From the sequence record LR756501.1: a stretch of DNA of 64,000 bases. One strand, written 5' to 3'. The translations under genes and the position numbers were made by a program. Of the stretch, positions 1,943 through 14,489 are shown one piece after another; the stretch's first letter is position 1, and each line of letters opens with the position of its first letter. The notes beneath the pieces were generated by a model. It did not search any database. It was not told where the DNA came from and saw nothing but the letters and a program-made list of their open reading frames with translations.

Positions 1943-1954
1943 TGTTAAAGAACA
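1943..1954 (-). promoter_or_regulatory. boxA-like antitermination element
   Basis: TGTTCTTTAACA versus the rrn boxA consensus TGCTCTTTAACA; lies just after the leader terminator and before the tRNAs. Confidence 0.65.
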
Positions 1955-1960
1955 TAAAAA

Positions 1961-1989
1961 CAAAAAACCCAATCATTGCTGATTGGGTC
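1961..1989 (-). terminator. Attenuator terminator of the Leu tRNA/LeuRS operon
   Basis: ACCCAATCA-GCAA-TGATTGGGT followed by TTTTTG. Confidence 0.85.
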
Positions 1990-2028
1990 TCTGTGACTTC
2001 ATTCGAGAAGAATTCATCCACACATACT

Positions 2029-2097
2029 TCACCCAATCAACTTTATACCCAAGAGGCATAAACTGTTCAGAAGGTTAATATGTAGAATGTTATTCAT
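2029..2097 (-). CDS. Leucine-rich leader peptide (22 aa) MNNILHINLLNSLCLLGIKLIG
   Basis: Leu codons CTA, CTT, CTG, TTA, CTC, TTG, TTG; 3' end contains TGATTGGGT, complementary to the terminator 5' arm. Confidence 0.85.
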   Translation of the reverse strand: MNNILHINLLNSLCLLGIKLIG

Positions 2098-2122
2098 ATA
2101 CTTTTATATTATAAGATTTATA

Positions 2123-2138
2123 CTTTGTTTTATATATT
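2123..2138 (-). promoter_or_regulatory. Putative promoter motif AATATATAAAACAAAG (copy 1)
   Basis: Identical 16-mer at 14474-14489 upstream of the second leader peptide; contains the phage TATATA motif. Confidence 0.65.
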
Positions 2139-2160
2139 TAATCAAAAATGTCTGTTTTTT

Positions 2161-2935
2161 CTATTTCTTTACTTTTATAAGATTATGTTTTTTAGCTAAA
2201 TTAACCCCTTCTTCGAAAGTGAGTACCTTTTCCTTTGTTGGTTTGAAGATGATTGCGTAATCACTACCATCTCTAGCCAAGGAGAAACACAACGGGCTTA
2301 TACCAAAATACAAGTCCATCCACAATTTATTAGCTGTATTTTTATTCATTTTATAATATAAGTTTCCTTTATAACTAATTCTTCATTTTTAGCAATGGAA
2401 TCTGGGTGATAACCACGTTCGTAAACTTCAAAAGATTTCTTTGCTTCGTCTATATTTTCACAATCTACTGTGAAAAATGGATGTTTTCTTACTCTTCCTG
2501 TGTTTAAATTTTTCTTATAAAACAGAAATTTTTTCATAGGTTTGGATTTAGAATACAAAGATACGAAAGTTTTCTAATTTAAAAAAATTAAATCATTTCT
2601 TTTTGAATTTATCACAACTATCAGTTTTCTTAACGGATTTGTATAACATTGGATGACCAATGAAACAAACAGTGTTCACGTCGTAAAAAGGTTTACAGTG
2701 AACACAATTTTCACACTTATTTTTTTCCATTATATTCATCATAAAGTTCATCAATAGTCATATGATATACACCTTTCTTTGGGTGTTTAAGATCAAGAGG
2801 TCTCTCCCAGAGTTTTCCACTATGAGAAACACACGTCCAACCATTTTTACCTAACCACTTTGCGAATTTACAAGCTTCCTTTTTCATAAAATTAATATTA
2901 AAGATTTTTATTGATGCGGACTCCCGATTCTCCAC
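2161..2935 (-). CDS. Four small hypothetical proteins (2161-2349, 2346-2558, 2593-2730, 2717-~2887)
   Basis: Tightly overlapping ORFs; 2593-2730 (45 aa, CxxCxxC...C...C) is missing from the ORF track. Confidence 0.6.
2556..2563 (-). promoter_or_regulatory. Bacteroidota-type sigma -7 element (TATCTTTG)
   Basis: Matches TAnnTTTG; similar elements at 4985, 14625, 22776, 36167, 47843, 52881, 58151, 59350 (minus) and 24432 (plus), all in or near intergenic gaps. Confidence 0.7.
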
Positions 2936-3101
2936 CGCTCTTTCTTGTAATTGGCCTCTGTATCATCCAATCGTTATAGGTTTACTACCGCTAAAGACGT
3001 GCTAATTTTTGGATCGTATCTTGTTACACTAGTTTCAATAAAAATCTGTTCACTGATAATTACTAATACAAATATAAGCTTCTTTTCTATATAAAAAAAA
3101 T

Positions 3102-3440
3102 TTACATCAATAATTCTGGATCTATTCCATTATCCATCAACTGCCTTTGATAATTTCCAAAAGGAACTTTGGCAATCTGTTTATCCCTAAACCCCTTCAT
3201 CTGTAAATAACCGGGTTTACCACCGTATTCTATATCATTATCAACCAAGAAATTATGAACATCAGCGTTAGTATTAAATCCACCTTCTTCGTGTTTTTTA
3301 CCGTCTTTAGTGTATGTTAATCCCCAACTCTTACCTTTACCAATGAATTCAACTTGAATGAATTTTGCTGTTTTTAGATCTTCTGCTAATTCTTTATGAG
3401 TCATTTCTTCGTTTAAGAAGGTATCAAATTTAATGTTCAT
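3102..3440 (-). CDS. Hypothetical protein with capsid-targeting-like N-terminus
   Basis: MNIKFDTFLNEE; upstream TATATA motif. Confidence 0.55.
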   Translation of the reverse strand: MNIKFDTFLNEEMTHKELAEDLKTAKFIQVEFIGKGKSWGLTYTKDGKKHEEGGFNTNADVHNFLVDNDIEYGGKPGYLQMKGFRDKQIAKVPFGNYQRQLMDNGIDPELLM

Positions 3441-3478
3441 AATTTATTGTAAATCATTTTTACTTATATATAAATCTT

Positions 3479-3841
3479 TTAATCCCAATTTTCTTCACCA
3501 TAAGGGTCCATCGGTGTAATCTTAATAATACCCAACTTTATTTTCCTCATTCTTTCTTCTAAATCCCTCTTCCTCTTTTCTTTTCTTATTTCTCTTTCCC
3601 TTAAACTCTCTTTAATATTATCAATAAGTGTAAATTCAAAACCATTGTCCTCCCACCAATCCTTAATAATAGAAGCTGCTATTATAACTAAACTTATAAT
3701 AGCAACAAGAGGAATTAAATGAATTACCATGCCTCTATTGTTTAGTTCAAAATCATTACTATTATGAGAAATGATAAAGACTATTACAATAGGTACAATA
3801 TAAAGAGCAAATATTAATCCGAAAAATAATAATGTCGTCAC
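3479..3841 (-). CDS. Membrane protein with C-terminal DPYGEENWD motif
   Basis: Two hydrophobic segments; ends [11 protein letters not shown]. Confidence 0.7.
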   Translation of the reverse strand: MTTLLFFGLIFALYIVPIVIVFIISHNSNDFELNNRGMVIHLIPLVAIISLVIIAASIIKDWWEDNGFEFTLIDNIKESLREREIRKEKRKRDLEERMRKIKLGIIKITPMDPYGEENWD

Positions 3842-4383
3842 GCCTCGTGTAATTTTTTAATTTCGTCCCTAATCCTAGCAGCCTCCATATAATCCTCAGT
3901 ATCAATTGCTTGCTTCAACTGGTCCTGTAAAGATGTTGGTTGTGGTTTTTCTTCGTTTTTAACAAATGGAATAGAATTGAGTACATTTTCGTCACCTATC
4001 ATTTGTTGTTCGTTCACCATTTTCTGTGTAGTAATGAGTCTTACTGTTTCCTTAACAGAATCAGATACGTTAATCACCCTATCTGATAGATAGAAATATC
4101 CAGCGGATAACGCTAGGCTCACTCTAACTCTTTTCAATTCCACTTCTAATCTTTCTTCGAAAGGAAGTTTAAAGAGTGTTTCGTAATATTCAGGTGTATT
4201 TTCAGATTTCTTTCTGAAATAGGAAAAAGAATACGCCCAATGAAGTTTCTCTATCGGTGTATCTTTATACTTACTATTACTATTTCTTAGTACGTTAATG
4301 AGTTCTTGTGACTCTTTTTCGTATTCTTTACATACTAGATCGTATGTTACAAACATCGTTATCATAACGTTATGGTTTTTCAA
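3838..4383 (-). CDS. Hypothetical protein with C-terminal UVR (UvrB/C) motif
   Basis: [27 protein letters not shown]. Confidence 0.8.
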
Positions 4384-4552
4384 ATAAAGTTAACATTAAA
4401 ATAAGATAAAGGAATACTGGGAAAAATCCCATCCAGGAAAAGAGTACGAATAATAATCTAACAAGAAATGAATCTATGTTAAAATATTCAGCCAAACCGC
4501 CACATACTCCACTTATTACAGCGTCATTTTTTGATTTGTAAAGTTTTTTCAT
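4370..4552 (-). CDS. PspC-domain protein
   Basis: [25 protein letters not shown]...VRLLFV...YLILMLTL. Confidence 0.9.
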
Positions 4553-4569
4553 TTTTGATTTTATTAAAA

Positions 4570-4967
4570 TTAATAATCCCAGTCTTCTTCTCCGTAAGGA
4601 TCTTCCGTAGTGAAAACCCTAACAATAATTTTTTTGATAGCGTTATAATGAAAATAAAACTCCATAGATTCAGACATATCCCAACGCCAACGTCTATCAA
4701 ATCTTACACCAACAACTTGATAGTAATCACGATATTGAATATCAAATACTTCACCTTCGTGGTTCTTGTATTTTATTCTAGAACCTATTTTAAGTTTTCT
4801 CATTTATCCCAATTTTCCTCACCGTAAGGATCAACAGGAATATAGTTAGCACCAGCCTTCTTCTTGATTTCATCCAAGATAGAAAAGATAGCTAACTCTC
4901 TAACGCTCTTAGCTATATTAGCCTTAACGATAGTCAGTTTAATCTTATTTTCTACTGATGTGAACAT
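4570..4967 (-). CDS. Two small proteins ending in DPYGEE(N/D)WD (4570-4803; 4800-4967)
   Basis: 4800-4967 (55 aa, MFTSVENK...[13 protein letters not shown]-like end [13 protein letters not shown]) is missing from the ORF track. Confidence 0.7.
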
Positions 4968-13788: not shown

Positions 13789-13792
13789 ATAT

Positions 13793-13872
13793 ATGTAATG
13801 AAGTGAGTCGGACTCTCTCCGAGTTTGGAAGGCAGACCTGTTGCGTTATCAGGTTTCAGCTACTCCATTACA
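13793..13872 (-). pseudogene. Degenerate tRNA-like element
   Basis: TGTAATG/CATTACA acceptor; TCCGACT T-like loop; hairpin inserted in the D-loop; CTTCCAA without an anticodon stem. Confidence 0.5.
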
Positions 13873-13876
13873 TAAT

Positions 13877-13954
13877 TGGGGTGTTTGGCGGGATTCGAAC
13901 CCGTATCTACAAGAGTCACAATCTTGCGCTTTCAGCCAATTAAGCTACAAACAC
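13877..13954 (-). tRNA. tRNA-His(GUG)
   Basis: CAAGA-TTGTGAC-TCTTG; C73; encoded CCA. Confidence 0.9.
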
Positions 13955-13956
13955 AG

Positions 13957-14030
13957 GGTGCTATATGGGTTTCGATCCCATTGCCTCATGCTCCACAGGC
14001 ATGCGCTCTACCGATTGAGCTAATAGCACC
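13957..14030 (-). tRNA. tRNA-His(GUG)
   Basis: CATGC-CTGTGGA-GCATG; encoded G-1:C73. Confidence 0.9.
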
Positions 14031-14035
14031 ATTTG

Positions 14036-14153
14036 CGGGGAAGACTGGACTCGAACCAGTGGCCTACGGCTTAGAAGGCGTTTTGTTTTGCTGTGAGTAA
14101 TTTGTGCCAAATTACGTTTTTTAACGTTGCTCTACCAACTGAGCTACTTCCCC
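14036..14153 (-). tRNA. tRNA-Arg(UCU) with a 45-nt insertion in the anticodon stem (14080-14124)
   Basis: Removing the insert restores ACGGC-CTTCTAA-GCCGT and a canonical 73-nt tRNA. Confidence 0.8.
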
Positions 14154-14188
14154 AATGAATTTAAATCAATATTTCAATGAACACTTTG

Positions 14189-14259
14189 CACGGGTGGAGG
14201 GATTCGAACCCCCATCAGCGGTTTTGGAGACCGTCACACTGCCATTGTGCTACACCCGT
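14189..14259 (-). tRNA. tRNA-Trp(CCA)
   Basis: CTCCAAA loop; G73. Confidence 0.93.
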
Positions 14260-14281
14260 ATTTTTAAGAACTTTATTAAAA

Positions 14282-14314
14282 CAAAAAACCCCAAACTTTT
14301 TGAGTTCGGGGTTT
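14282..14314 (-). terminator. Attenuator terminator of the second tRNA operon
   Basis: AAACCCCGAAC...GTTTGGGGTTT followed by TTTG; then boxA-like AGTTCTTAAAA. Confidence 0.85.
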
Positions 14315-14335
14315 TCCGTTATTACTATGTTTCTA

Positions 14336-14431
14336 TCAGCTAACACATAGCAAATCCGTTTCAACCCCGAATGTGGTAAACCACTTGGATGATGAACTAA
14401 AATGTTTACTATGTTTAGATGTCTGTAACAT
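14336..14431 (-). CDS. Leader peptide (31 aa) MLQTSKHSKHFSSSSKWFTTFGVETDLLCVS
   Basis: Codons 5-18 are all S/K/H/F/W; TTCGGGGTT (14363-14371) is complementary to the terminator 5' arm (14305-14313). Confidence 0.85.
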   Translation of the reverse strand: MLQTSKHSKHFSSSSKWFTTFGVETDLLCVS

Positions 14432-14473
14432 GATTTCTATTTTTTTAATATTGTTTGTATTATATCTTTTTAT

Positions 14474-14489
14474 CTTTGTTTTATATATT
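14474..14489 (-). promoter_or_regulatory. Putative promoter motif AATATATAAAACAAAG (copy 2)
   Basis: Identical to 2123-2138. Confidence 0.65.

Follow-up and report, generated by a model that had tools for sequence, protein, structure and literature searches.

The DNA analyzed here, called the window below, is a 64,000-nucleotide stretch (bases 193,061-257,060 of sequence record LR756501.1) of the 735,411-bp genome of an uncultured huge phage. It carries two tRNA operons, units A and B, that are probably gated by leader-peptide transcription attenuators. The genome was assigned by Al-Shayeb et al. to the Mahaphage clade, with a predicted Bacteroidetes host (PMC7162821). The window was free of N, and all tRNA genes of the region lay on the minus strand; window features are on this strand unless a plus sign is given.

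Layout of the two units

Unit A started with a promoter-class motif (AGAAAAAACA-GACATTTTTGATTAAATATATA, positions 2131-2162), found in a motif scan of the genome. The leader open reading frame (ORF) at 2097-2029, with its ATG at 2097, encoded the peptide MNNILHINLLNSLCLLGIKLIG and a stop codon. Leucine made up 33% of this peptide versus 7.5% expected (P = 6e-4), and its seven Leu codons were of all six kinds. The ORF was followed by a hairpin (AGAGACCCAATCA/TGATTGGGTTTTT, 1992-1963) with a T-run to 1953; this terminator (1953-1992, 13 pairs) was the top hit of the terminator scan and formed in the minimum-free-energy fold. A boxA-like element (1933-1954) consisted of TGTTCTTTAACA at 1954-1943 and TTGAAATA at 1940-1933, and was reported to lie 9 nt past the T-run of the terminator. 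Behind it were found a tRNA-like element with the complementary flanks AGATTGC/GCAATCT (1804-1888; Rfam tRNA, 38.5 bits), an arrangement shared by the related contig L140, and five tRNA-Leu genes (1240-1784). The anticodons of the latter (TAG, GAG, CAA, TAA and TAG) jointly read all six Leu codons.

Unit B had the same order of parts. Its promoter-class motif, from the same scan, was GGAAAAAAGT-GACTTTTTTTTCAAAATATATA (14482-14513), and its leader ORF (14431-14336, ATG at 14431) encoded MLQTSKHSKHFSSSSKWFTTFGVETDLLCVS and a stop codon. K, H, S, F and W accounted for 16 of the 30 residues, versus 23% expected (P = 3e-4). The terminator (14277-14315) comprised the hairpin AAAACCCCGAACT-caaaa-AGTTTGGGGTTTT (14315-14285), an 18-bp helix in the minimum-free-energy fold, and a T-run. 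The array at 13543-14259 contained, in this order, Trp, a 118-nt tRNA with an insertion, His, His, a tRNA-like element, Phe, Lys and Ser. Further tRNAs (Lys, Trp, Lys, Lys and some long or odd ones) were found at 9875-12425 amid genes for a class I Trp/Tyr-type aminoacyl-tRNA synthetase and endonucleases, and are probably the distal part of the unit B array.

Leader peptides match the downstream tRNAs

When the sequence ahead of each tRNA cluster was read, another three units built in the same order came to light, so that the genome holds five. Unit C (about 174.2 kb in the genome; leader MNFRIINMIQEQMQQIQNLIGGTISY) preceded tRNAs for Met, Gln, Gln, Gln, Met (three), Ile and Glu (three). Unit D (about 367.6 kb; leader MLFNSNISVKFTPAPAVAFRRGTGTGTGTCVPAGCGFEGMNG) preceded Arg, Thr, Val, Ala, Gly and Pro, and unit E (about 188.5 kb; leader MKNMVRKYNDYCINDKLKMLIG) a bL12-like gene and then Ile, Cys, Asp, Asn and Tyr. 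The leaders were enriched in L (A), K/H/S/F/W (B), I/M/Q/E (C), T/P/A/V/R/G (D) and Y/N/D/C/I (E). Taken together the enriched residues comprised all 20 amino acids, and so did the identities of the downstream tRNAs.

In all, 28 distinct units from this genome, IMG/VR and metagenome contigs were pooled by means of motif scans; some of these loci are truncated and their tRNA lists incomplete. In contigs recovered with the promoter motif, every tRNA array lying no more than about 700 nt past the motif came with both a terminator and a leader ORF. The leader peptides of the relatives differed in sequence and kept the same logic: MNNILHTNLLNLLDLLGYNWIG preceded four tRNA-Leu (L140), MRYMNNNNDCNDMDKKLTGFLT preceded Asn, Asn, Cys, Met, Asp and Asp (L438), MKTNMTSLQQLQLLLSLQKREIGVLLSKS preceded Leu and Gln tRNAs (L489), and MKNLTLNIVAVVAVARPVGVRPAGRGTYVSRLKSNVMTMM preceded Arg, Ala, Gly and Val (L495). 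Homologues of leader B were present in L120, L031, L422 and L032. A probe made of the first 19 nt of the Leu leader recovered L140 alone, and a DNA similarity search with both leaders against GenBank phages gave no match beyond the genome itself and LR756503.1, a duplicate record of it.

Over the 28 units, the enrichment of cognate amino acids above the genome background gave a combined P of 1e-36 (Fisher). When leaders and tRNA sets were re-paired at random, the observed score was reached in none of 20,000 permutations. Both Leu leaders (that of unit A and its homologue in L140) used all six Leu codons across seven Leu positions; CTG and CTC are rare codons in the genome, and under its codon usage the P was 0.007 for each leader. 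An earlier sequence-only reading of units A and B had predicted that further copies would stand ahead of short ORFs, each enriched in the amino acids that its own tRNA cluster serves; three such units were found in this genome and about two dozen in other phage contigs. Its suggestion of a genome-wide family of leaders, unlike in sequence and alike in logic, which is divided up by amino acid, was borne out by the five units and their 20 amino acids.

The bL12 (L7/L12)-like ORF of unit E (genome about 187,960-188,340, minus strand; about 37,960-38,340 of contig L004) came after the leader and its boxA and before the Ile/Cys/Asp/Asn/Tyr array, so that a protein gene would also be under the control of at least one attenuator.

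The start context AAATAGAAAT(N)ATG was conserved at leaders of different classes (window about 14432-14445; L031, L032, L036 and L495), and most leaders opened with M-(K/N/R)-N-(I/M/V). Where hosts have no Shine-Dalgarno sequences, this context may signal the start of translation.

Promoter class and the shared 16-mer

The 16-mer AATATATAAAACAAAG had been noticed as an identical promoter motif of the two operons. Exact copies were indeed present on the minus strand, and thus on that of the tRNAs, at positions 2123-2138 (A) and 14474-14489 (B). They stood 25 nt (A) and 42 nt (B) ahead of the leader ATG, and behind each came a short ORF, then a strong intrinsic terminator and then a tRNA array. 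The number of near-matches in the window was equalled by none of the shuffles, and the whole 735,411-bp genome contained the exact 16-mer only twice, in units A and B. It consists of the last 8 nt of a promoter motif (AATATATA) and 8 nt of A-rich sequence downstream. The second 8 nt showed no conservation in relatives and would be just an A-rich transcript start.

As a marker of the family the exact 16-mer was rejected. More than 118 IMG/VR contigs contained a copy, none of them with the promoter context and only one with a tRNA, at a distance; in this respect the idea of a shared family signal failed. The identity over 16 nt goes back to a common ancestry of the two units A and B and is not a family signature.

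The element that was conserved read GGAAAAAAATGAC(T/A)TTTTT-N5-6-(A/T)AATATATA, or in its longer form (G)GAAAAAA(A)T-GAC(T/A)TTTTT-N5-6-(A/T)AATATATA, with AATATATA at the end. The motif with its upstream A-tract occurred in about 12 to 17 copies in the genome, five of which lay ahead of the tRNA leader units. Outside this genome, contigs that carried it numbered more than 120 in IMG/VR and more than 120 among the metagenomes. The class is not specific for tRNAs, as it also occurred upstream of the major head protein gene (phrog_138, E = 9e-23) and of other protein genes. Since it serves the major head gene, it probably fires during bulk synthesis of structural proteins. We regard it as a probable phage-specific promoter, from which the transcripts of the units would start.

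Further copies preceded protein genes of the window at 24359-24380, at 37519-37540 and, arranged back to back and divergently, at 50316-50337 and 50374-50395 (+). Protein genes of the window carried Bacteroidota-type TAnnTTTG elements, for example TATCTTTGTA. A scan for sigma-70-type promoters gave 77 sites versus 77.1 expected, which is the level of chance.

Terminators and covarying antiterminators

A GC-rich hairpin with a T-run was present between leader ORF and tRNAs in every unit. The leaders also contained a segment, region 2, that can pair with the 5' arm of this hairpin (region 3), a feature that was absent from the sequence-only reading. In unit A region 2 (TGATTGGGT, 2031-2039) overlapped the last codons and the stop codon and was a perfect 9-nt complement of the terminator 5' arm (shuffle P = 0.003). 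In unit B it covered codons 21-23 (TTCGGGGTT, 14363-14371) and complemented AACCCCGAA in the terminator 5' arm, likewise over 9 nt (shuffle P = 0.002).

All 28 units contained a perfect complement of their own terminator 5' arm of 6 to 11 nt, and in 23 of them it was at least 7 nt long. It was situated in the 3' part of the leader ORF in every unit except L389, where 6 nt at codon 5 gave a shuffle P of 0.49. The terminator stems varied among the units and region 2 varied in step, as can be seen from the pairs TGATTGGGT/ACCCAATCA (A), TTCGGGGTT/AACCCCGAA (B), GGGTGTGGG/CCCACACCC (D) and GGTTCGGATTT/AAATCCGAACC (L031). The antiterminator thus covaries with each terminator. The mean complement was 7.96 nt with the own terminator versus 4.90 nt with unrelated terminators, and 21 of the 28 units matched their own terminator better than every foreign one. 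For single units the shuffle P lay anywhere between less than 0.002 and about 0.5; combined over the units it was 2e-21. The cognate residues were concentrated ahead of region 2, where they made up 48% of the positions as compared with 14% from region 2 to the stop codon (P = 3e-16); this is the arrangement that an attenuator requires.

Short ORFs and partial complements could also arise by chance in AT-rich intergenic DNA beside GC-rich terminators, and some single units would agree with this, as several antiterminators had shuffle P values between 0.05 and 0.5 and five units had complements of 6 nt only. Over the 28 units, however, the combined P values of 1e-36 for the leaders and 2e-21 for the antiterminators, the permutation result of 0 in 20,000 and the difference before and after region 2 (P = 3e-16) leave coincidence with practically no credence.

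boxA elements

The boxA of unit A, TGTTCTTTAACA, agreed with the E. coli consensus UGCUCUUUAACA at 11 of 12 positions (consensus sequences of E. coli and B. subtilis from PMC13753749). The recurrent form in the phage was (A)GTTCTTTGA-N4-TTGAAATA; other genomic copies read AGTTCTTTGA-N4-TTGAAATA. The common phage form shared UCUUUGAA with the B. subtilis consensus (GTTCTTTGAA as compared with the B. subtilis core UCUUUGAAA). GTTCTTTGA occurred 21 times in the phage genome, and four copies were found within 200 nt 5' of a tRNA called by ARAGORN, versus 0.12 expected (P = 6e-6). Copies were located after the terminators of units A, D and E, within arrays, 5' of a tmRNA-like gene, and twice in a locus for a candidate non-coding RNA.

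A boxA-like site had been claimed after each of the two terminators. This held well for unit A, but in unit B only a weak match was found directly 5' of tRNA-Trp (AGTTCTTAAAA, 14262-14272), which had 7 of 9 positions of the phage consensus GTTCTTTGA (GTTCTTAAA) and taken alone was not significant. A third site, described as lying inside a tRNA-Glu-like array, was confirmed between tRNA-like genes at 35782-35771 (TGTTCTTTAAAA). It belongs to a separate array with a host-type TAnnTTTG promoter and no leader.

To place the motif in bacteria, one genome per bacterial or archaeal species was scanned with AGTTCTTTGANNNNTTGAAA. At least 120 loci matched, and Bacteroidota were the largest group among the matches listed. 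In Bacteroidota, AGTTCTTTGA-N4-TTGAAA was found between tRNA-Ala and 23S rRNA or about 100 nt 5' of 16S rRNA. As a simple pattern for the start of 23S rRNA under-counted the rRNA contexts, Rfam was used instead. This placed the motif 20-40 nt past the spacer tRNA and 50-160 nt ahead of 23S rRNA in L196, L167, L143, L204, L220, L224 and L150, and about 100 nt before 16S rRNA in L209 and L245. The same motif occurred between tRNAs in some bacterial tRNA operons (L168, L186, L214 and L235). Spacer and leader positions in rRNA operons are the classical positions of boxA. The phage motif is identical to that of the Bacteroidota rRNA operons, and the unit A element shares its layout; the phage therefore copies the antitermination signal of its presumed host's rRNA operons and sets it behind the attenuators. 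The phage boxA would be expected to be used by Nus factors (NusB/S10).

Promoter, short ORF and terminator might also constitute separate genes for micropeptides or small RNAs, the arrays being transcribed from downstream promoters of their own and the boxA-like motif acting as a promoter or processing signal. This would account for the strength of the terminators, and host-type TAnnTTTG promoters do precede some tRNA arrays, namely those at 171.6 kb and 362.8 kb in the genome and at 35.6-36.0 kb in the window. It would, however, leave unexplained the match between peptides and tRNAs, the covarying complement of the terminator and the position of the cognate codons ahead of region 2. Moreover, units A, B, D and E had no promoter motif between the terminator and the first tRNA, and the boxA-like motif occupies classical boxA positions in host rRNA operons. 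We thus consider separate small genes very improbable.

The tmRNA-like gene (genome about 718,100-718,760, minus strand; about 11,040-11,700 of L014) started with GGGCTCGACAGGC just past the boxA, and its tag frame ended in ..EDLVLA followed by a stop codon. It contained a group I intron (Rfam RF00028, 96 bits) that seems to be located in the T-loop. The ARAGORN tmRNA search called nothing, probably because this intron interrupts the gene. SmpB was encoded in the window at 6440-6889 (Pfam, E = 2.5e-53). The candidate for a new non-coding RNA (genome about 608,100-608,790, minus strand; about 1,040-1,730 of L012) showed a host-type promoter (TTATCTTTGTAT), a boxA, about 330 nt and a second boxA. 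This was followed by about 320 nt of GC-richer, structured-looking sequence. The locus had no long ORF and no Rfam match at the gathering threshold.

Ribosome position and the proposed mechanism

The effect of ribosome position was modelled for 10 units by folding transcripts that were cut before the 3' arm of the terminator, with a 30-nt mask for the ribosome. For stalls at most cognate codons, the helix between regions 2 and 3 (2:3) was part of the minimum-free-energy structure. In unit A it paired with the ribosome stalled at Leu codons 5-15 and was blocked by a ribosome at the stop codon; in unit B it paired with the ribosome stalled at codons 5-16.

Units A and B are thus best read as two of five leader-peptide transcription attenuators which gate the tRNA arrays of a Bacteroidota-infecting huge phage, and from the sequence we put the probability of this at about 0.78. 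Transcription would start at the promoter class GAC(T/A)TTTTT-N5-6-(A/T)AATATATA, and a ribosome would translate a leader of 22 to 42 codons dense in codons read by the downstream tRNAs. With ample cognate aminoacyl-tRNAs the ribosome would move over or past region 2, the terminator (3:4) would form and the polymerase would stop. If any of the sensed aminoacyl-tRNAs ran short, the ribosome would stall upstream and leave region 2 free, and 2:3 pairing would let the polymerase read on. The read-through RNA would bear the host-type boxA and could load NusB/S10, keeping the polymerase processive through the untranslated, structured array. The net result would be negative feedback, each array being made when its own product is limiting. 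The earlier proposal of an attenuator and a boxA ahead of each tRNA array, in one family partitioned by amino acid, was supported by every sequence-level test run.

Several points weigh against this interpretation. When complete leaders were folded at equilibrium with ribosome masks, the terminator almost always won; a kinetic switch would be expected to behave in this way, and the attenuator would depend on co-transcriptional kinetics. A ribosome at the stop codon blocked 2:3 pairing only in A, L140 and L032; in the other 7 of the 10 units region 2 lay 5-10 codons before the stop codon and was left uncovered. Termination would therefore need either a ribosome still on the move or one that sits between regions 2 and 3 and keeps them apart sterically. 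There was no consistent region 1, and without a ribosome 7 of the 10 truncated leaders already formed the antiterminator, for which reason the default state may be read-through and not superattenuation. Most leaders lacked a Shine-Dalgarno sequence; such scarcity is expected for Bacteroidota, but translation of the leaders is no more than predicted. The boxA of unit B is degenerate, several relatives had no obvious boxA, and we know of no test of boxA function in Bacteroidota. The phage is uncultured, and the whole case is made at the level of sequence and comparison.

The switch might also respond to general translation capacity or amino-acid starvation, the codon content merely tuning its sensitivity. 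Formation of the 2:3 helix without any ribosome in 7 of 10 truncated leaders speaks for such a general sensor, since untranslated leaders would read through, and a stalled ribosome cannot distinguish a missing amino acid from a missing tRNA. Such a sensor, however, would need neither a leader composition that matches the array nor all six Leu codons in both Leu leaders, and we hold it to be unlikely.

With the arrays gated by their cognate aminoacyl-tRNAs, the five attenuators could act together as a codon-resolved tRNA homeostat, in which each leader samples the codon families that its own array serves, as the Leu leaders do with all six Leu codons, and loss of one isoacceptor during infection switches on just the array that replaces it. 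Phage-driven host shut-off, a mismatch in codon usage or anticodon-nuclease defences of the host could each cause such a loss. We put this forward only tentatively and with more doubt than confidence. If true, the tRNA arrays of the phage would be an inducible counter-measure and not constitutive cargo, to which the host-mimicking boxA adds processivity.

Relation to known regulatory systems

The units resemble the enterobacterial attenuators (trpL, hisL, leuL, pheL, thrL and ilvL) in having a promoter-proximal ORF with regulatory codons, a terminator and a mutually exclusive antiterminator on the terminator 5' arm, with ribosome position deciding between them. Leaders that sense several amino acids are known from thr and ilv. 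The phage units differ in that they would regulate tRNAs and not biosynthetic enzymes, that up to six amino acids would be sensed by one leader and 20 by the five units, that they are coupled to a host-type boxA, and that they belong to phages probably of Bacteroidota. The trp layout is also departed from: region 2 is part of the ORF and often precedes the stop codon by 5-10 codons, a consistent region 1 is missing, and the default without translation may be read-through.

Attenuators of aminoacyl-tRNA synthetase genes are closer in logic. The His leader of hisS/hisZ is an example of leader-peptide attenuation of such genes (PMC2965389). In pheM-pheST and hisS/hisZ, too, a component of translation is up-regulated by stalling on cognate codons when its own aminoacyl-tRNA is limiting; the phage units would regulate the tRNA itself and control arrays of mixed identity together. 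An attenuator-like region ahead of the E. coli tRNA-Phe gene pheV was reportedly discussed in 1985. T-box riboswitches also read through when charged tRNA is low and use a terminator/antiterminator pair, but they bind uncharged tRNA directly and need no translation, whereas the phage units rest on a leader ORF. A T-box or other riboswitch was also looked for in the window itself; in the Rfam scan only tRNA models passed the gathering threshold, and the T-box reading was ruled out. In logic the phage units are closest to the aminoacyl-tRNA synthetase attenuators and T-boxes.

The boxA/Nus antitermination of rRNA operons is also used at suhB and at CRISPR arrays (PMC13753749). The phage boxA shares with that of rRNA operons the core sequence and the place after a promoter and before a long untranslated structured RNA. 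It differs in standing after an attenuator and ahead of tRNA arrays, the tmRNA-like gene and the candidate non-coding RNA, and no boxB hairpin was identified. As in lambda N/nut and HK022 put, a phage RNA signal in the nascent transcript would make the polymerase resistant to terminators, but neither an N-like protein nor a put-like RNA is implicated, and the signal copies the host rRNA boxA.

A search of the full-text literature gave no report of attenuators ahead of tRNA arrays and no regulatory logic for phage tRNA arrays. The mechanism would be classical ribosome-mediated attenuation, and its use on phage tRNA arrays appears to be unreported. The units bear on the questions why large phages carry dozens of tRNA genes and how these are controlled, and supply a concrete mechanism. 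Attenuation would here have been re-used in such a way that the sensed aminoacyl-tRNA is the product of the regulated genes, in a design conserved across many uncultured phages. The known range of leader-peptide attenuation would then take in phages and probably Bacteroidota hosts, and a case of phages copying the host rRNA boxA would be added. The units are compact sensors specific for amino acids or codons and could potentially be reused in the laboratory.

Other features of the tRNA regions

The synthetase ORF of 237 amino acids at 11374-12087 (class I, Trp/Tyr type; Pfam tRNA-synt_1b, E = 1.6e-35) had a KMSKS motif and was situated directly upstream of a tRNA-Trp gene. Homing-endonuclease-like genes were scattered among the tRNAs at 415-1185, 9939-10814 and 12443-13276, with matches to GIY-YIG plus NUMOD1, to DUF559/MTES_1575 and, weakly, to endonuclease I.

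Some tRNAs were 110-120 nt long owing to an insertion of about 40 nt (14036-14153, 10990-11100 and 1804-1925 in the window; about 173,830-174,000, minus strand, in the genome). The insertions and nearby sequence shared (T)TACAGCAAA(C)AAAA, and in length the inserts fall short of group I introns.

The separate array at 35657-36030 comprised two tRNA genes with tRNA-Glu-like acceptor stems and odd anticodon loops, for which ARAGORN gave 2-nt anticodons and Rfam 47-54 bits. It had a host-type promoter (TATTTTTG), the internal boxA-like site and a terminator of its own, and lacked a leader ORF.

A pair of tRNAs with the anticodon CTA (amber suppressors) was found behind a host-type promoter at 690,585-690,738 in the genome (plus strand; about 33,525-33,678 of L013), which hints at reassignment of TAG in part of the genome. 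The stop codon of the leader ORF was TAG in none of the five units.

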